DNA of 64,000 nt, from the NCBI GenBank assembly GCA_965603825.1, contig CBFDEM010000004.1, forward strand, positions 1 to 64,000, written 5' to 3'. Source of the DNA: Blepharisma stoltei ATCC 30299 (Eukaryota > Protista > Ciliophora). A model generated the notes under the pieces. That model had not been told where the DNA came from. It ran no database searches and was given only the letters and a program-made list of their open reading frames with translations. Position numbers and translations under genes: made by a program. Positions 34,465 to 64,000 of this stretch are shown here, piece after piece (the stretch's first letter is position 1; each line of letters starts with the position of its first letter).

Positions 34465-37400
34465 TTACGGCATAATTTTCATCACAGCATTTATTTTCTG
34501 AAAATATTTCTTTTCTCTTCTGAAAAACACCAAATAAAGCCCTAAATATAAAGCAAAAGAAAAAAGAATAAAAGCGATGAGCACTGCTACGATAATTTTC
34601 ATTTGGTTATCTATAACGCTTTGTGAATACTTATCAGTCTCATCAATAAAACTATCAAAATTGTAATCTAATTCTTGGAGAGCCGCAATTCACTTTCTTC
34701 ACATAAAATAATCTGGATAATAAAAAGAAAGAGAATATGCATCGGCCATTATACTTAACTTTGAAGAGTATATTCCATATGCTAAATAATCTGCACTATA
34801 CTGTTTATCATATTCATAAAGAGCAGCTTTAATATTTTCTGATAAAACGTCTGCACACTCGTTTTTCCTTATTGCCGAATTTGAGTAATCTAATTTTGAT
34901 ACGATTTCTAAAAATTCATTTTCGTTATCACTGAAAGGAAACATAGACGATAATTGATCTAGAATCGGTAATCCAAATTTTGTCATGCTAATCTCAGTTG
35001 TTCATATATTCAAGCTTGTATATAAAACTTGTATATTTATTAAAGTCTTTAAAACTTCTGGTCTAGCCAATAAATAGTCAGCACATTTTTCGTAAAGATA
35101 GGTGATGTTTATTATTGAAAATAATAAAGAAAAGGCCAAAAATATAAGAGTTCTTCATGCATACTTTCAATAGCTTTTAAAAGTATATGGCTTCATAGAA
35201 AGATGAGGCTCATTTAGTGTTACGTCTGCCTGAAAATGAGCATATTTAAGTCTTTCCATAATTATTTGCTTTAGCTCAAAATAGTGACTATAGGCATTTT
35301 TTCTTATTGTATTCCAAAGATTGTTTTCTATCTTAATGATTGTGTAATAAAATGGAATCATTATTAAAATGCATATAATCAGGAGCGCAATTCCTAATAA
35401 TAAAAGAATTATCATGTCAGTTTTAAAGCTGCTCATCATAGATTTTTGGTAGTCTATAATATCATAAAGTGAATTATTGCAATATCGAATCGATTCTCCA
35501 TACCCATTTAATAATAAAAACGACATATCATTCAGTCCATTGCCAGTATTATTTAATTCGCTTAAGAAACTCTTTCCCTAAATAAATTTTACAATTTTGA
35601 TAAATGCTGCAATTGTATCTATCAAGGTTGATTTTTTCTTATAAACTCCATTTTCATCGATTCTCCATAAATTTACAGCTTCATCAGTCAAAATGCTTTG
35701 GCCTAAGCAAGAATTTCTGATTTTAAGATTCATAGTAACATTTCAATAAATATTTTCTAAATCCGCTAATTTTTCTTTATATTCCTGAAACGTTAATGCA
35801 GTTGCTGGATCATTAGACTTAATGACAGTGGCTACATATATCATTCTTGATAGATAGCCGATTCTCTGAAAATCTTTTCCAGATTTTCCTATGCTTATAG
35901 GAAGACTCATGTCACTGATTAAATTTATGTCGTAAAAAGCATAAATTAAGACTGTAATGTTGACAGCCAAAACTACAAGCATCTGTGTAAAAATTACTGA
36001 AAAGGCAAATGCTAAATGTAAAATATTGATGGCCTTAGATGAGGATTTTATCATATTGAGAAATCTCCTATGAGAAGAGCATGCTGATAGCTGAGATTTT
36101 GAATCATTATCACGTTTTTCTGACAATTCTTTAGCATTTTTTTCTGGAAAAAGCATAATTTCAGAGTCTAAGCATTCTCCAAAGCGGGGGCTTTCTCTAT
36201 AAGTTGAACTAAAAGTTTTATCAGTGCATAAAGATCCTAACTGCTCCTTCTTATAAACTATTTTTTTCTAAAAATAAAAATCGTTTTTAATTGTTGTGTT
36301 CAGTGGGAGTAAAAAATTTATTGATAATTGATTCGTTACTTGGGTTTTCCCTATTTCGACTGAATTTTCATTATTTCATTTTAAAAGCTCTTCTTTGTCG
36401 TTTATGAGAGCTACATAGGGCATTTTCATTTTGTAAAATTCTGAGTGCGAAAGAATTAAAAAAGTTTCAGTCTTGAAGTTTGATAAATGGTAAGGGATAT
36501 TTGGCTGCAGCTTAAAGTCTTCTGAGTTAAAAAATAAGGTTTTTAAGTTCCATCCTACCAAGTTTTCAGATTTTTTAGCTATTCTATGAAAATTATCCGA
36601 GTGGCAAATTATTTCTCCTTCCTCTGATATCAAAGCAACCTCGTAATTTTTGACTTTGGGTTTAAATACAAATATAGCTACAACTAGATCGTTCACGGTA
36701 GTTACTGAGACTTTCCCTACACATTCTAATAAATCATTTTGTGTTATTAAAATGAATCCTTGGCTTAAATCTATTTCAGATGAGGAAGTAAATTGAACAA
36801 ATCTTTTGGCTTCAGCCTTGAATTTTTCTTTATAATAGGGGTGAATGAAGTTTAAAATGTTGTCACTGATAAGGCTGCCAATTGGGAGCCTAAAATATTC
36901 TGCAGATTTTTGGTTGGCATAAAGAATATCACCAAAATTTTGGAGTTCATTCGAAATTATCAAAATTCCATTACTGTCATTAAAAAAGCTAAAATTTTTA
37001 GAATCACTAATGAAATTTCCAAGAGTTCTGTCTAGGGCTCTTAATTTCATCTCAAGTAAAATCGATTTTTCCGAGTCATAGGTGATATCCTTAATAAATG
37101 AATAATAAAGAGCTAAGGATTCTCTCGAATTGGGGAATTTCAAATTTAAATTGCTGTATTCTTTATTTAAGAATAAAATTTCTTCATCTATCAAGTTGAG
37201 ATTCTTTTGTAGTTTATGCAGATTCGGTATTGATGAGGCAATTTCACTCCAAAAATTCAGTAAATTTGTACATAAAATTTCATCTGTTTTTTTAATTATA
37301 TTGAATTGCAGAAAATAATTAGAATATTGTGATCCTTCAGATAAATTGGCATTGGAAATATTTGTTTTACATATATATTCTTGGTATGCAGCTTCAAGAG

Positions 37401-38691
37401 ACCAATCTGAAATTTGTTTTATTTTGCTGAGCTTGATTTTTGCTAAAGATGCTTCTTTTAGAGTAAATAAACAGTAGTTAGCTGCTCATATAACTTGAAG
37501 CTTGCTCCTGTTAACCCCTTTTTCTATAAAAAAAATTTCAAAGGTACTGATGATTTGATTTTTGTTTTCAGTATCGTTTGAGCATAACGCATACCTTAGA
37601 GATTTTTCTAAATCGTATTGTGAATTTATTTCTGCCAAATTTTCAGGAATACATTTATTTATTTGTTTTTGCAATGCTACAGAAAATTGAACAATAAATA
37701 AAACTGATAATGGACCTAAAATAATTACCAAAATTGAAATAGCTAATGAATTATCCATTAAACTTCCTAGAAGAAAAATAGAAGAAATAAAACCTATAAG
37801 GTATAATCTCAGAATTATAATAGAATGATAATAAACTGAAAAATAAGGTAAAAACATAGTAATTTCCTTTATCAAGAACGCTGCAAAAATGATAGCTAAA
37901 ATTTGTAAATATATAATGTCGTTTTCAGCAAGCACAGAATAAGCAATTGGAAAAAAATATGTAAAAAGTGTGACATGAATATCAATTTTTGAGTGAGCTT
38001 TAGCATTTATAGCTTTTTTAGAAACAAAGTGCCGAATTTCTCCTGAAAACTCTGTCTGAAAAAAAATTAAAAATAGGGAAATGACCAGTGCAACACTAAC
38101 TCCAAATTGCAATAGAGGGCTTATTTCGAATTCTTTAAAATCATTATGATTTTCATATTCTGAGACACTATTTTGAGGTAAAAAATTATATTTGAGAAAG
38201 ATGGAAAATATTTCAATTGAGGGGATTAGAAAAAACGTTGATCATAAGTAAAAAATCTGTTTAAAAGTACCTAAAATATATTTTGGTAAAGGATAAGAAT
38301 AATAAATAATAATGACAAAAGGAATAATACAAAAAAAATGAAAATAAACTGCCAAAGCAGATAAGTAAAGACATTCATTTATTATCCCTAAGGATGAGCA
38401 GGCATTGTCAAATTTTAAATAGCCAATTATTTCTCATATTATCATATTTTTGTGTCAATTTTTAATTGAAAGATGTGGGATTCATAATAAGCTTATAGTT
38501 TGAAAGCATCAAATAATCCCTTCAAGTGCTGTTTTAGCTTTTTGTAATATAAAATCTTCTACCTCTAAGTTTTCATCATAGTAAAGCCGCCGATAAAGCT
38601 CAAAAACAGAGATCTTGATATTATTTTGAGTTTTATTTCACTTTTGTGTGAAACCAAAAATTGTGCCAGCTTGATCCTCTAATTCTTTCAT
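34465..38691 (-). CDS. Membrane PAS protein copy B, ~1374 aa after removing 72-bp insertion; introns 35983-35997, 35578-35592
   Basis: Colinear with the other copies. The only non-intron in-frame stop found (TAG, 36268-36270) lies inside a TA-bounded insertion absent from paralogs. Confidence 0.85.
36238..36311. mobile_element. 72-bp TA(A)-bounded IES-like insertion in copy B
   Basis: TAA direct repeat at 36238 and 36310. Deleting 72 bp restores QLSINFLGSLCTD, against QLSINILGSLCSD in copy C. Confidence 0.8.
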
Positions 38692-39015: not shown

Positions 39016-42000
39016 TTATGGCATTATTTCCATGACAGAATTTATTTTCTGCAGATACTTCTTTTCGCTTCTGAAAAACACCAAATAAAACCCGAAATAT
39101 AAAGCAAAAGAAAAAATAATAAAAATAATGAGTGTGGCTACAATGATGCTCATTTGGTCATTAATTACGCTTTGTGAGTAAGCATCTATTTCGTCTATAA
39201 AAGTATCATAATTTGAGTCCAGTTCTTGAATAGAAGACATTAAATTTAGTCATATTTCAGGATTCTCAGATGAGCTGACTACTAGGGAAGCTTCAACTAC
39301 TATGTTTAGCTCTGCTGAGTAAACCCCAAATGCAAAATAATTTGAGTCATGCTGCTTGCCCTCTACATACAGAGTTTCTTTAAAATCTTTAGATAAAATT
39401 GCTGCATACTTATCTTCTCTTATTATTGAGTTTGAGTATCCTAATTTTGATATGATTTCTAAGAAATCATTTTTGAGATTGCAAAAAGGATAAGTAGAAG
39501 GAAATTCATATATTAAAGGGATACCTATGCTTTCCAAAATTACTTCCGTTGTTGATATACTCAAACTTGTATATAAAATTTGCAAATTTATTAGATTTTT
39601 CAACACTTCAGGCCGAAATAGCAAATATTCTGTGCATTTTTCATAAAGATAAGAAATGTTTATAATTGAAAATAATAAAGCAAATGCCAGGTATACCAGT
39701 GTTCTCCATATATATTTTCAGTAATTTTTAAAACGAAATGGCTTCATAGAGAGACGCTGATCGCTTAAAGCTAGTTCTGGCTGAGAGTGGACGCATTTAA
39801 GCCTTTCCATAACTGTTTGCCTCAGCTCAAAATAGTGATTATAAGCTTTTTTTCTTATATTATTTCAAAGATTGTTCTCGATCTTAAAAATTGAGTAGTA
39901 AAATGGGATTATTATTAAAATGCATGCCAATAAAAAAACTATTCCTAGCAGTAAAAGAATTGTCATTTTAACTTTAAAGTCGCTCATCATAGATTTTTGG
40001 CAGTCTATAATATCATACAGTGAACTATTGCAATAGTGAAGCGCTTCGTCATACCCATTTAATAGCAAAAACGAAATATCTGTACTAGTCGCAGTCTCAT
40101 TGGTATAAAATTTTTGGGCTAGGCCGTTTCCCTATATATTTTTTACAACTTTAATAAATTTTGCTATTGTGCTTATTAGCGTAGTTTTTTTTTTATAAAT
40201 TTCATTTTCATCAACATTCCATAAATTTACCACTTCATCAGTCAAAATGCTTTGGCCTGAGCAAGAATCCCAATTATTTAGATTTGAGGTAACATTTAAG
40301 TATAAATTTTCTAAATTCGATAAAATAATGATATATTCCTTGGCCATATCTATATATAATGGATCTTCTCACGGTAGGTTTGGAAGTGAAAAAAGCATCC
40401 TCGAGAGATATGCGATTTTCTGTAAATTTTTCCCTGTTTTCCCGATACTTATAGGAAGATTCATGTCGCTTATAAAATTTATATTGTAAAATGCGTAAAT
40501 TAAAACTGTAATATTGACAGCCAAGACAGTCAAAATCTATATAAAAACTACTGAAAAAACAAAGGCTATATGCAACACATTGATGGACCTTGATGAGGAT
40601 TTTATCATATTGAGGAATCTGGCTTGAGAAGTGCTTGCTGAAACCTGAGATTTTGCATCCTCATCACGCTTATCTGAGCCTTCAGCGTTTTTGTCAGAAA
40701 ATCTATAGAGCATTATTTTGGAGTCTAAATCTTCTTCTGAATGACTGCTTTCTTTATCAATTGAGCCAAAATTTTTATCAGAGCATAAAGACCCTAATAT
40801 ATTTATTGATAATTGGCTCCTAGTTATTTGTGCTATTTCTTTATTCCCCTGTGGATTTTCGTTGTTCCAATTTAAAAGTTCTTCATGACTATTTATTAGT
40901 GCTATATAGGGCATTTTCATTTTGTAAAATTCTGAGTGTGAAAGAATTAGAAAAGTTTCAGTTTTGAAATGAGACAAATAGTAAGGGGTACTTGGCTGCA
41001 GCTCAAAGTCTTCTGAGCTAAAAAATAAGGTCTTCAAGTTCCATCCTACCAAATTTTCATTTTTTCTGGCAATTCTAGGAAAATTATCCGAGTGGCAAAT
41101 TATTTCTCCTTCCTCTGATATCAAAGCGACCTCATAATTTTTGACTTTGGGTTTAAATACAAATATAGCTACAACGAGATCGTTCACTGTGGTTACTGAG
41201 ACTTTCCCTACACATTCTAGTATATTATTTTGTGTTATTAAAATGAATCCTTGGCTTAAAATTATTTCAGATGACGAAGTAAATTGAACAAATCTTTTGG
41301 CTTCAGCTTTGAATTTTTCTTTATAATAAGGATGAATGAAGCTTAAAATGTTGTCACTGATAAGGCTGCTAATCGGGAGCCTAAAATATTCTGCAGATTT
41401 TTGGTTAGCATAAAGAATATCACCAAAATTTTCGAGTTCATTCGAAATTATCAAAATTCCATTACTGTCATTAAAAAAGCTAAAATTTTTAGAATCACTA
41501 ATGAAATTTCCATGAGTTCTGTCGAGGGATCTTAATTTCATTTCAAGTAAAATCGATTTTTCCGAGTCATAGGTGATATCCTTAATAAATGAAGAATAAA
41601 GAGCTAAGAATTCTCTCGAATTGGGGAATTTCGTATTTAAATTGCTGTATTCTTTATTTAAGAATAGAATTTCTTCATCTATCAAGTTGAGATTTTTTTG
41701 TAGTTTATGCAGATTTGGCTTTCCTGAGGCAATTTCACTCCAAAAATTTAGTAAATTTGAGCATAAAATTTCATCTTTTTTTTTAATTATATTGAATTGC
41801 AGAAAATAATTAGAATATTGTGATCCTTCAGATAAGTTGGCATTGGAAATATTTGTGCTGCATATATATTCTTGGTATGCAGCTTCAAGAGACCATTTTG
41901 AGATATATTTTATTTTACTTAGCTTGATTTTAGCCAAGGATTCATCTTTTAGAGTAAATAAGCAGTAGTTGGCTACTCATATAGCTTGAAGCTTATTTCC

Positions 42001-43188
42001 ATTCAAACCTTTTTCTCTAAAAAAATTTTCAAATAGATGGACTATTTGGTCTTTATTCTCTATATCATTTGAGCATAATGCAAGTCTTAGAGATCATTCT
42101 AAGTTGTATTGTGAATTTATTCCTACTAAATTTTTTGGAATGCTTTTAGAAAATTTATTTTGCGCTTTTAGAGAAAATTGAATAGCAAAATAAGTAGATA
42201 TTGGGCCCAAAATAATTGTTAGTATACAAACAACTAACGAATTATCCATAAAATTCCCTAAAATAAAAAGAGAAGAAATAAAAGCAATAAAATAAAATCT
42301 CAGAATTATAGCAGTGTTGCAATAAATTGAATAATAAGGTAAAAATATAATTGTTTCTTTAATCAAAAACACTGCCAAAATTATTGTTAGGATTTGTAAA
42401 TAAATAATGGAATTTCTTGCAAGCACCGTATAAGTCATCGGAAAAAAAAAGGTAAAAAAAATGATATGAACATCAATTTTTGAGTGTGCTTTCGCATTTA
42501 TTGATTTTTTAGTCATAAAATGTCGAATTTCTCCTGAAAAAACTGTCTGAACAAAAATTAAAAACAGGGTAATTAGCAGTGCAAAAATAATGGCAACTTG
42601 CAATGCAGAGCTTATTTCAAATTCTCCTAAATCATTATTATTTTCATATTCTGAGACAATATTTTGAGGAAAAAAGCTATATTTGAGAAATATGGAAAAT
42701 ATTTCAATTGCTGGTATTAAAAACAAATTCGATCACAAATAGAAAATTTCTTTAAAAATTCCGAGGGCAGATTTTGGCAAAGAATAAGAGGAATAAATAG
42801 CAACTAAAAAGACAGACATACAAAATAGGCTTGCATAAGTGATCAAAATTGATAAATAAAGGCATTCATTTATTATCCCTAATGACGAGCAAGTATTGTC
42901 AAATTTTAAGTAACCTATGATTTCCCAAAAAATCATATTTTTGTGTCAATTTTTTATTGAGAGGTCAGGAACCCACAGTAAACTTATGATTTGAAAGCAT
43001 CAGATAACCCCTTCAAATGCTCTTTTAAATTTTTGCCTTATAATGGTCGTCTCTTCTTGGTTCCCGTCAGAATAAAGTTGTCGATGAAGTTCAAAAATAG
43101 AGTGCTTGAGGGATTTTTTTTCTGTTGTATTTCAAAATTTTTGTGTAGCATTAAGAAATTTACCAGTTTCAGATCGGATTTCTGTCAT
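39016..43188 (-). CDS. Membrane PAS protein copy C, ~1380 aa; introns 40537-40551, 40132-40146
   Basis: Frame consistent from ATG 43188 to TAA 39016; same architecture and intron positions as the other copies. Confidence 0.87.
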
Positions 43189-43529
43189 GATTGATTTTAA
43201 TTTATAAATTTTTTAAAATCATAAATATCATTAAAACTTATCATTGATAGCCATCATAGTTTATTATTTAGAAAGTTTTAGGCATGATTAATACATTATT
43301 AAGGCCATAAATGATAAGATAATAAAATTAAACCGAAATGGAAAGGTTTAATTTTATTAATTAATGTATATATTATTTAATTATTAAGTTAAATAGGAAA
43401 GTATCATTTCATATTAATTTCAATTGCAAGAACTCAATAAAATCAACAACTTTGATACTTTTTGAAAAGATACTCTAAAGAGTAAGATTATAACATATTC
43501 ATTTTATATGCATACTATTAAATTTATAT

Positions 43530-59199: not shown

Positions 59200-59910
59200 A
59201 TAGTCAATAAATTAATTCTAAAATAAAGAAAAATATGCATTAATTATTGAAATAATTATTATATGAAATTTAACTAGTCATAACTGATTTTATAAATTCC
59301 AAAAATTCCAAAGTCTGGCTTTTGGACATTTTAGCAAGGCTATATTAGGGAAATTTTAATAATTAGCAGCTTGCCATATTAAGCCTTTTCGAAAAGTAAT
59401 TTTTAACAGAGGAATATTTTTGTTAATTAAAATCTAAAAGAAATGACTATATTAATAAGATTTTGGAATCTAATGAAAAATTAATTCAAATTATGAAGCG
59501 TATGTTTTAGAAATAAATAATAATTTAGTTTTAATTATATTTACTTTATAAATAATTATTAGGCATAATTTGCTGTATCGAATATATTTTCTGCAAATAT
59601 TTTTTCTCATTTCTGAAAAACAACAAACTGAATCCAAAATAAGCCACAAATGAGAAAGCAATAAAAATAAACAACGCTGCTTCTATAATTACCATTTGAT
59701 CATCAATAACGCTTTGCGAATATTTATCAATATCGTCAGTAGTAGCCTTGTCAAAAAATTCATCTATTAGCTTAAGATTTTCTATTCAAATAATCCAAAA
59801 ATCAACATTACCTTCACCATATCCTTCTATATATGCATCAAATATTCATAATCCTTGAGCTGAGTATACTCCAAAAGCAAAAAAATCTGAGAAAAAGGGT
59901 GTGCTAAAGG

Positions 59911-59965
59911 TATAGTGACTTCAGGTAGATGGCGCATTCCGCGCCATCTACCTGAAATCTCTATA
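59911..59965. mobile_element. TA-bounded palindromic insertion (25-bp arms, 5-nt loop)
   Basis: TATAGTGACTTCAGGTAGATGGCGC-ATTCC-GCGCCATCTACCTGAAATCTCTATA, 23/25 complementary. Removing 53 bp restores NQLPLAHPF. Confidence 0.8.
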
Positions 59966-62900
59966 ATTGGTTTCATAGCCCCATGCCATATGTTTCTCCA
60001 CTCATTTGTTGGGCCCAGATACCTAAAGATGTGTATAAGACTTGCATTTGGATTAAATCTTTAATTATTTCTGGTCTTTCAGTTAAATATTGTGAGCATT
60101 TTTCATAAAAATAAGCTATGTTTATTAAGCTGAAAAATATAACAGCTGCAAGCATGCAAGTGTCCTTCAAGAATATTTCCAATAGCTTTTAAAAGTGCAA
60201 GGCTTCATAAAGTTCTTTTGATGAGAAAAGAGGGACTCCTGCTGAAGGTGTATTTCTTTTAGCCTTTTTAAAAGTGCTTGTTTAAGCTCAGAGCTATTGC
60301 CAAAAGCTTTTTTTCTAATGCTCCCTCAAAGAGTATTTTCTATCTTAAAAATCGAATAATAAAAAGGAAGCGCTATAAAAATGCAAACAATAAGCGCAGC
60401 AAGACCTAGTATTAAAAGCAGAGCCATTTTGGATTTAAACTCAGCCATCATTGATTTTTGGCATTCTATAATGCTAATTAACGATTGATTACAGTAGTCA
60501 AGTGCTACTCCCCATCCATTCAAAATAAAAAATCTGAACAAATTTCATGGCATTTCTGACGGATTTTCGATTTTTCTTTTAAATTCATTTCCCTATATAA
60601 TTTATACAGAATTGATAAACATTAGAATAGCAGATAATAAATTTTCTTTCTTTCTTATAGTTGAATCTTCTGTGCTCCATAATAAAATATTTTCGTCTCC
60701 TAAAATACTTTGGCCAGAGCAAGTGCTTCAGCTTTGGTAGCTAGATATTATGTTTGCATAAATCTGTTCTAAATCTGACAAGGCCTTTGCAAACTTTTCA
60801 TTTGAAGCTTTTACTTCTTTATCGCCATTTTCAATGTGAAGATATGGCAGCATTATCTGAACTTGTGCATAAATAGCAAGTCTTTGGAAATTTTCCCCAG
60901 CTCTTCCTATATTTATCGGAAGATTCATGTCACTTATAAATTTAATGCTAGCAAAAGCATAGGCTAAAACAGCAATATTTACAGCTAAAACAATTATAAT
61001 CTGAATAACAATTACAGACAAAGCAAAAGCGAGATTTAAAATATTGATGGATCTGGCTGATGAATTTACCATATTGAGATACTTGTGCATGGCTGAATTT
61101 TGGAATTTTCATCATCATGATTATTTGATGTGTCCTTTTCTGTCTCTTCTTCATAAGAGTCAGTAAAAAAATTCATTTTTGAGTCATAGTATTCTCCTTG
61201 GTTTTCTCTATTAAAAGAGCTGGCAGTCCGAAAAGTGTCACATTCTGAAATTTTCATAGATAATCTATTTTTCGTAACTTATAAATATTTTTCATCATTT
61301 TGAGCAGCTTCATTAAAATTCTCCCATTTACGAATTTCTTCACTATCATGTATTAGCGATACATATGAGATTTTTATATGATAAATTTCATAATATGACA
61401 ATGTCAATAAAAATTCACCAGAATTTTGTTTTATATGATACGGCACAAATGGCTTTAAATCAAAATATTCTGAGTTTAAAAATAATGTTTTTAGTTTAAA
61501 TCCTATCAAATCAGGTTTTCCTGCAAGCTTAGAGAAATTAGGTGAGTGGCTGACGATTTCTCCATCATCAGAAATCAAGGCAATTTGATTGGCATTCTCT
61601 TTTGGCTTTAAAATAATTATAGCGACGAGTAAGCTATTTATTGAAGTCACCCATAGCTTTCCAGTAAACTCTAATAAGCTATTATGGATACTTAAAAAGA
61701 AACCTTCGCTTAAATCCATCTCTGAAACTGAGCTGAACTGAATAAATTGTCTGGCTGCTTCTTTAATCCTCTCTCTATAGTAAGAATCAATAAAATCAAA
61801 AAAATTGCTAGTAAATAATCCTATTTTTAGGAAGTCTAAATATCTCAGATAATCTTTGGTTACAATGGATAATTTCTCCAAAATTATTTTTTTCATTTGA
61901 TATTATTAAAATTCCATTGAGATGATGGGAAAAGCTGAAAATAGTCGAATTATTTTGGGTATTTGATATGGATTTTTCAAGCACTTTTAACTTTACTTCA
62001 ATTTGTCTCGATTTTTCGATATCATAAATAATCTGTTTATAATATGATGCTAAAAGAACCAAGGATTCTTTTGAATTAGGAAATTTTATGCATATTTGGC
62101 TATATTTCGTATTTAAATTAGAAATACTTTTGTTTATGGAATTCAAGTCTGTTTTTAGCTTTTTTAAGCTTGGTTTAGCTAGGGTAATCTCGTTTCAAAA
62201 TTTAAATAAATTGATACATAATTGTTTATCTGCTTTTTTTATTATGTGAAATTGCAAAAAATAATCTGAAAACTGAGAGCTTTGAGAAGAACAAGCATTT
62301 GAGATATTTTTCTTACATAAATATTCTTGATAGTTTGCTTCGAGACTAAAATCAAAAATATTTTTGGTTTTATTTAGCTTAATTTTAGCTAAAGATTCAT
62401 CTTGCAATGTAAATAAGCAATAATTTGCTGCTCATATCGCTTGAAGTTTGTTTCCGTCTAGCTTTTTTTCTATATAGAAATTCTCAAATATTTGGATTAT
62501 TTCGTCTTTATGCTTAGTATCATTTGAGCACAATGCATGTCTGATGCTTTTTTCTAATTCATATTGAGAATTTATTCCCAATAAAATTTTCAGTATATAG
62601 TTGCTTACTTTTCTTTGAAATTTAAGTGAAAATTGAATAATAAAAATTGCTAATAGCGGCCCTAAAATAAATGCTAGTAAAGAAATAGCCAATGAATTAT
62701 CCATAAGACGCCCTAAAAGAAAAATAAAGGAAGCTAAAGCAATAAAAAACAGTCTAAGAATTATAACTATATTGCAAAAAATGAATAATAAGGCAAAAGC
62801 GTTAAGACTTCTTTTATTAAAGTGGCTGGGAAAATAAATGCTAAAATGTGCAAATACAATATGTGATTTTCAGCTAGGATTGCATAAGCAATTGGAAAAG

Positions 62901-63139
62901 AAAAGCTAAATAGTAATAGATGAGCGTCAATCTTTGAATGTGCCTTTGCTTTTAATGTCTTTTTGCTTGCAGAATGTCTAATTTCGGCTAAGAATTCAAT
63001 ATAAAGTAGCATCATTGCAAATGAAATTATTATTGCAAGCATAATTGTGGTTTTTCAAAAATAATTTACTTCAAAATCAGATTAGTTTAGATTAGATTAG
63101 AACTCAATCTACGTCTTTATGACAGAAATTTTATATGCT

Positions 63140-63625
63140 TATCAATCAGAAGGCACAATTTCTTATTCCGCAGAGGTCATTGGGGACTCTGAATATGCTT
63201 CTTATATTTTTGCAACGAAATCCTGAAATATATTTGGGATATTCCATCTTGATTTGCCATCACCATTTTTAAATTAAAACTTTATTTATAGATGGAGTTT
63301 AAATAATGCAAAATAAAGACACCATTACAGTTTTATAATTCTAAAATTCAAACCGCCTCAGTCGAATAAGATTTTTAATATTTAAAATGCTAATTTGAAA
63401 AAATGAATTTGTCTTGTTGTCCAAAAATGTAAAGCAAAGGTTTCATTATCATTTATCAATTTTTTAATTCATATTTCCAATTAAATTGCCCCAAGGAATA
63501 GGAGTCTTAATATTTAAGATTGTAATGGTAAATCAAGATGTTGAATAGTGAAAAATATGAATCAGTGGGCGAGTCCAAAAAGGGTATAATAAAGGTACCA
63601 TTATTATTTATTAATTATTTAAATT
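63140..63625. mobile_element. Non-homologous insert with degenerate inverted repeats in copy G
   Basis: About 480 bp stands where paralogs have roughly 110-130 bp. CATCTTGATTTGCCATCACCATT (from 63245) is an imperfect inverse of 63518-63540. Boundaries approximate. Confidence 0.45.
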
Positions 63626-64000
63626 TCTAAGAATAATAAATAAAGATAACCAATATGATCGTACTTATAAAGCTAGCATAAGTAAATATAAACAATAAAT
63701 AAAAACATTCATCAATCATTCCTAATTCTGAGCAAATACTATCAAATTTGGAGAATCCAATAACTTCTCATATAGTATTATTATTGTTTCAATTAGCAAT
63801 TGGCATATCAGGAACTCATAATAGGCTTATAGTTTGAAGGCATCATATTGTAGCCTCTATCGCTACTAAAATTTGTTGACTTACAACAGAATTTACTTGA
63901 TTGTCGTTAATATTGAAGAGCTGCCAATAAAACTCAAAAATCGAATTCTTGATTGATTTTTCTTTTTCAATTTTTCATAGCTTATGACTTGAATTTTGAG

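Follow-up and report, generated by a model that had tools for sequence, protein, structure and literature searches.

A 72-bp IES-like insert in a TmcB-like membrane protein gene of Blepharisma stoltei is old and present in somatic DNA

How does a 72-bp sequence with the length and boundaries of an IES come to stand in the somatic DNA of Blepharisma stoltei, in the middle of an otherwise intact gene? The window analyzed here covers 64,000 nucleotides of strain ATCC 30299 (contig CBFDEM010000004.1, positions 1 to 64,000). It appears to be somatic (MAC) DNA: its long ORFs appear only if UGA is read as Trp. The telomere repeat CCCTAACA fills the first 1.6 kb (positions 1-1643, ~205 repeats).

The host gene lies on the minus strand at 34465-38691. 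Based on its sequence, a domain search, and its paralogs, it encodes a TmcB-like multi-pass membrane protein, which comprises 1374 aa once the insert and two introns are taken out and then contains no stop other than its terminal one. The protein has an N-terminal TM block, a TPR_TmcB domain (PF25474, minus strand 37063-37326, E 2e-7, above the cut-off), a PAS region with a weak match to PF00989 (minus strand 36805-36936, E 0.03, below the cut-off), a linker, and four C-terminal TM segments. Both introns, predicted from the sequence and paralogs rather than from RNA, are 15-nt GT-AG introns on the minus strand: one at 35983-35997, with its branch A at position 10, is common to the family and intact, and the other at 35578-35592 is intact here and damaged in a sister pseudogene described below. 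An exact-product look-up of the host protein returned no match, which says nothing about absence. The gene belongs to a tandem array, of which ~30 copies on three contigs were examined, several of them decaying. Clustered PAS membrane-protein orthogroups with eroding pseudogenes have been described in this organism (PMC9942806 SI), and the family is probably OG0000018/OG0000052 of that study, an identity based on the description rather than on accessions: both have the N-terminal TM block, TPR_TmcB, a central PAS, clusters near contig ends, and eroding pseudogenes. The nearest intact paralog by alignment (39019-43191, minus strand; hereafter the 39-43 kb paralog) is free of the insert.

The insert occupies 36238-36309, one TAA included, and a second TAA follows at 36310-36312. 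The bounding direct repeat is exactly 3 bp (36238-36240 and 36310-36312; TTA on the coding strand) and is likely a target-site duplication, so that the whole IES-like feature spans 36238-36312. An empty site with a single TTA was found in the 39-43 kb and 130-134 kb paralogs, confirming the clean TAA-bounded insertion reported in the initial annotation. The reading frame on the minus strand is kept across the insert and the insert ends are not GT..AG, as had also been noted, and the in-frame TAG maps to 36268-36270 (minus strand). This stop terminates an 807-aa product out of 1374 aa, and the predicted truncation past the PAS region was thereby borne out. In-silico removal of the insert restored a paralog-like junction, as proposed (SINFLGSLCTDK versus SINILGSLCSDK in the 39-43 kb copy). 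A TA-containing direct repeat arose by chance in 3.8% of simulated random 72-bp insertions, and pairs of TAA/TTA spaced 72 bp apart were frequent (3.5 per kb). The case for an insertion therefore rests on the comparison with paralogs.

The annotated resemblance to the short periodic IESs of B. stoltei held as well. These elements are 65-115 bp long with a major peak at 72 bp and retention of ~0.02 or less (Seah et al. 2023, PMC9942856), and 72 bp is among their two most abundant lengths. Like them, the insert is 72 bp long, carries a TA-containing repeat, lies within a gene, and would restore the ORF upon precise excision; its length, like its TAA repeat, agrees with what is known of excisase preferences (PMC9942856 SI). 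However, it is present in the MAC at approximately full depth, as detailed below. In addition, each end, read from the sequence, matches the weak periodic-IES consensus TATrrntttt at only 1/7 informative positions, a poor fit that may explain weak excision.

In each of two DNA sequencing runs (X2 and X6), one contig crossed both junctions with 0 differences and at a depth similar to that of the flanks (87 and 80, respectively). X2 is probably the same strain, as its long contigs showed no differences from the reference, and X6 is probably a MIC-enrichment fraction. The excised 72-bp joint was absent from the assembled contigs of both runs, although assembled contigs drop rare variants; of the loose contig ends examined in X6, none was demonstrably an IES branch, and they hence provided no sensitivity control for such variants. 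At contig resolution, the focal gene of this strain thus carries the insert in essentially all its somatic copies, and in the MAC of this strain the insert does not work as an IES. As to variation in retention at this junction, which the annotation had proposed to measure, the contigs of two runs from one strain showed the insert-plus form at flank depth and no insert-minus form. The proposal of a germline-type element in somatic DNA also stood in part. Its somatic presence was confirmed and indirect evolutionary evidence points to past excision (see below), whereas absence from the MAC, which would define such an element, was not observed.

These data bear on whether a germline IES was simply built into the somatic assembly. 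The IES-like length and ends of the insert would suit such an artefact. However, contigs of both runs carry the insert at the full depth of its flanks, no alternative path was present, MIC reads make up just ~20% even of enriched libraries (PMC9942856 SI), and a sister copy of the gene carries the insert too. Because the insert is spanned at flank depth in two runs, we consider an assembly artefact excluded for practical purposes, while low-level excision could still escape the contigs.

A second class of elements resembles the insert in its somatic residence. The 'cryptic' IESs of the Blepharisma MAC have a length peak at 72 bp, commonly carry TAA/TTA repeats, are retained at a median of 95%, and are considered to be MAC-destined sequences excised by error (PMC9942856 SI). 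The insert is likewise MAC-resident, 72 bp long, flanked by a TAA repeat, and retained. In contrast to cryptic IESs, it is foreign and breaks the ORF, and its removal would repair the gene. In Paramecium, weak or retained intragenic IESs are tolerated in dispensable genes (Sellis et al. 2021, PMC8354472). The present case is similar in that the insert is intragenic, its excision appears to have failed, and the gene is probably dispensable, but it comes from another ciliate class, its retention seems to be complete, and one strain was examined.

The age of the insert could be estimated from the closest paralog, a pseudogene at C4:135.3-138.7 kb (the sister copy, C4:135-139 kb) that is 87-89% identical to the focal gene. 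In a MAFFT alignment of 29 family copies, two (focal and sister) carried the insert and the other 27 lacked it. The homologous insert of the sister copy lies at the same codon (C4:136396-136465) and differs from the focal one by ~10 substitutions and 4 indels in ~62 bp, which fits neutral divergence at t=0.18. Since a diverged insert occupies the same site in the sister copy, the insert is old, and its insertion preceded the duplication that gave rise to the two copies. A genome search of the assembly (41,464,486 bp, 64 contigs) for further copies of the element gave the sister copy only, with pattern hits at control level. In the sister copy, a 7-bp deletion removed the right TA boundary of the insert, and the pseudogene has also acquired a 1.3-kb deletion, a 560-bp insertion, and ~12 frameshifting indels. 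The ~560-bp insertion (L029, G000:C4:136810-137369) is GC-richer and stands in place of ~54 coding bp; within 190 kb it had no second copy, and it is not clearly TA-bounded.

The bases of the TAG are common to both insert copies. We enumerated the ancestral indel states, which ranged from 70 to 75 nt; only the 72-nt and 75-nt cases are in frame, and both place the TAG in frame. Every ancestral state either shifts the frame or contains an in-frame TAG, suggesting that the insert disrupted the ORF already before the duplication and that a full-length product would always have needed its removal.

Selection downstream of the insert offers an indirect view of whether such removal took place. We used a codon model, pairwise for focal versus sister and in a five-taxon fit for individual branches. 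The pairwise omega was 0.24 upstream of the insert and 0.53 downstream (below 1, p=8e-4), while downstream omega among intact paralogs was ~0.30. In the five-taxon fit of the downstream part, neutrality of both branches was rejected (p=0.004), and so was evolution of both branches at the family background (p=0.008); the downstream omega of 0.53 lies above the background of 0.30. Neither copy has a nonsense change downstream, with ~11 expected under neutrality. Disruptive indels downstream numbered 9 in the sister and 0 in the focal copy (p ~0.03 given the branch lengths), and in the focal copy the 1.7 kb downstream of the insert is free of further stops, frameshifts, and splice-site damage. 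Frameshift and nonsense counts of distant pseudogenes were unreliable and were excluded. From these substitution patterns, it appears that the full-length product was needed for much of the insert's time, with some relaxation. Removal at the DNA level would account for this most simply. Partial purifying selection together with the undamaged focal copy indicates that, over most of its history, the insert most likely underwent excision as an IES, although no excised form occurs in the data.

We therefore favor the reading that this strain failed to excise an old, weak IES, and assign it a probability of roughly 65%. An unlikely alternative is a fixed inactivating insertion that was never excised, or not for a long time, in which case the focal gene would be a pseudogene in slow decay or would have been selected as an N-terminal truncation. 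Consistent with this, the excised form is absent from the contigs of two DNA runs, other pseudogenes of the array keep insertions, and downstream omega on the focal branch (0.73, 90% bootstrap 0.37-3.1) is not distinguishable from 1, with upstream omega at ~0.2. However, the rejection of neutrality for both branches (p=0.004) and the absence of nonsense, frameshift, or splice-site loss from the focal 1.7 kb, compared with 9 disruptive indels in the sister, argue against it. Branch-specific omega was too noisy for dating the loss of excision, but as the focal branch is indistinguishable from neutral, the loss may predate this culture.

When the focal gene is compared with the 39-43 kb paralog, similarity is a mosaic, with the two much closer around the PAS region (t ~0.21; 36330-37200 versus 40800-41700) than downstream (t ~0.77), which suggests gene conversion within the array. 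Such conversion would blur the history of the insert as read from the sequence upstream of it.

The stop codon in the insert could also be dealt with at the RNA level, either by splicing of a 72-nt GT..AG intron (36339-36268 on the minus strand) or by UAG readthrough. This 72-nt stretch (36268-36339), probably a chance occurrence, is the shortest in-frame GT..AG candidate and would remove the stop, and the insert is a multiple of three and lies in a flexible linker. However, Blepharisma introns are 97% 15-16 nt and splicing declines with length; with intron criteria of 15-17 nt, GT/GC/GG..AG, and a branch A at 10-12, there was no candidate of 15-17 nt covering the TAG at the insert locus. Moreover, the GT of the 72-nt stretch is private to the focal copy. 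Readthrough is not a habit of the family, since none of the ~20 intact paralogs has an in-frame TAA or TAG outside introns. Taken with these observations, rescue at the RNA level seems improbable.

The RNA evidence consists of two putative RNA runs, in which short exact-match pieces lie downstream of the stop and none spans the junction. The nearest upstream piece ends at 36329, 17 bases before the insert, and the upstream pieces derive mostly from the 39-43 kb paralog (30/30 variants). The exact-match contigs downstream of the stop would fit a gene fission, in which the insert provides a stop and the AT-rich tract allows separate transcription and translation of the downstream half from a Met 28 codons further on, so that selection would act on both halves with no excision at all. 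The very short UTRs of Blepharisma (PMC9942806) would also be compatible with this, as would the Met of the LDSxM motif, which is common across the family. However, no other examined family copy is split at the insert site, and a long 3' UTR or DNA carry-over would also explain the downstream RNA pieces. When the downstream piece was used in a word-based protein search, no relative came up at E <=1e-3, a result that is uninformative about absence. Fission is also improbable, if marginally less so than RNA-level rescue.

A regulatory role for the insert has an obvious precedent. At the mtA gene of Paramecium, maternal small RNAs control the removal of a functional promoter segment in one of the mating types. 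Both cases involve a TA-bounded segment whose presence or absence alters gene function. In contrast to mtA, one state was seen here (one strain, contigs), and it is retention that breaks the gene. The initial annotation had suggested that variable excision might act as a heritable, mtA-like switch between a truncated and a full-length sensor. In the focal copy, neither TA boundary has been lost and the length is still 72 bp, selection constrains the upstream half (omega ~0.2), and the stop falls at a domain boundary, all of which would suit regulated, maternally inherited switching. However, no alternative state was seen, as both DNA runs were insert-plus only; the insert ends are poor, and the family is redundant, with ~30 paralogs of which several are decaying. 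The data thus do not support a switch, which we regard as very improbable. Equally improbable is its most elaborate form, a Bogo-MITE remnant that has shrunk to the excisase optimum of 72 bp, can still be excised, and through its maternally inherited retention toggles the PAS sensor between full-length and truncated; if true, this would be the first heritable DNA-editing switch in a heterotrich ciliate.

The origin of the insert may lie in a transposable element. Bogo and BogoMITE, Pogo-family MITIES of Blepharisma, have a TAA/TTA target duplication and a C-rich terminal inverted repeat (TIR). BogoMITE is ~389 bp long, has a TIR of ~30 bp at both ends and a conserved internal sequence, and occurs in many copies, and degenerate BogoMITE pieces are already known from shorter IESs (PMC9942856). 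Right after the TTA, the insert has a degenerate Bogo/BogoMITE-like TIR (36291-36309, minus strand), with moderate support from its match to the published TIR (PMC9942856). Among C-starting TTA/TAA sites in 190 kb, the left end of the sister insert matched the Bogo TIR best and the focal end was tied second. The left-end match was significant against random TTA/TAA sites (p <=0.0004), a resemblance that was spotted post hoc, and less so when the TIR tail was shuffled (sister p=0.013, focal copy 0.16). The right-end match was weak (p 0.04, and 0.37 against a shuffled TIR tail), and the two ends of the insert resembled an inverted repeat at chance level (p=0.36). The insert is similar to BogoMITE in its TAA/TTA target duplication, with a single TTA at the empty site, and, with moderate support, in one end that resembles the C-rich TIR. 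It differs in its length (72 bp versus ~389 bp), its collapsed poly-C, a second TIR that is barely recognizable, its two copies, and its presence in the MAC. On balance, we lean towards a Bogo-like origin.

The Bogo TIR core, searched with <=2 mismatches, had nine matches in the MAC assembly (L037-L045; C18, C5, C11, C14, C30, C35, C53, C60) versus 0 in the control. A degenerate C-rich run precedes the TIR-like motif in L037, L038, L041, and L043, and no partner TIR was found for any of the nine motifs, which are likely solo Bogo relics in somatic DNA judging from their sequence. The motifs were considered as relatives of the insert, but they have no convincing internal sequence in common with it.

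The history that we propose for an old, weak IES starts with a Bogo-like MITE that probably inserted at a TTA in the post-PAS linker, duplicated the TTA/TAA, and shrank to ~72 bp. The duplication into the focal and sister copies came after the insertion. The insert would then have acted as an IES, cut TA-to-TA during macronuclear development, so that the downstream halves of both copies stayed under selection. The right TA boundary was lost in the sister copy, which decayed, while the focal element, its boundaries intact, came to reside in nearly all somatic copies, as seen for this strain at contig resolution. Excision may have failed or weakened in the strain lineage through decay of the ends in cis, maternal-type inheritance, or drift of a partly retained copy. 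The last would have had 50 years of clonal culture in which to act; ATCC 30299 has been in culture for >50 years, and assortment of retention in Paramecium was slow over 50 divisions (PMC8467633). The focal gene would now give an 807-aa truncated or NMD-degraded product, with no need for a regulatory role, and the truncation would be tolerated because ~30 paralogs exist. Two downstream 15-nt introns, the sister insert, its pre-duplication age, and the Bogo-like end are features that the initial annotation overlooked.

The locus offers a datable end of the life of an IES, from insertion at a TTA and shrinkage to 72 bp through duplication to boundary loss in one copy versus retention in the other. 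Should the Bogo link hold, MITEs would gain support as a source of short periodic IESs. We know of no test of the maternal inheritance of somatic retention in Blepharisma, for which the insert would provide a simple PCR marker. As no excision was observed and the gene family is redundant, this one locus carries modest weight.

The surrounding array showed further features. It is subtelomeric and contains at least 23 TmcB-like PAS membrane genes (window 29500-64000 and G000:C4:64000-148000) that share two 15/16-nt introns, and at least five copies are pseudogenes. One pseudogene copy (window 59561-63968) is frameshifted at several points, and close to its 5' end it has AT-rich insertions (~118 and 236 bp) that may be retained IES-like pieces as well. 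Broken copies of the family also contain two palindromic inserts of ~54 bp (window 59911-59965, and C4 near 109,130, L026), which are GC-rich and TA-bounded and have a core in common. An inverted pair of paralogs at G000:C4:68265-77239 (L021 and L022) is 92% identical, and the copy on the plus strand shows about six frameshifts but hardly any nonsense changes, if any; in the young pseudogenes of the array, indels seem to outpace nonsense mutations.
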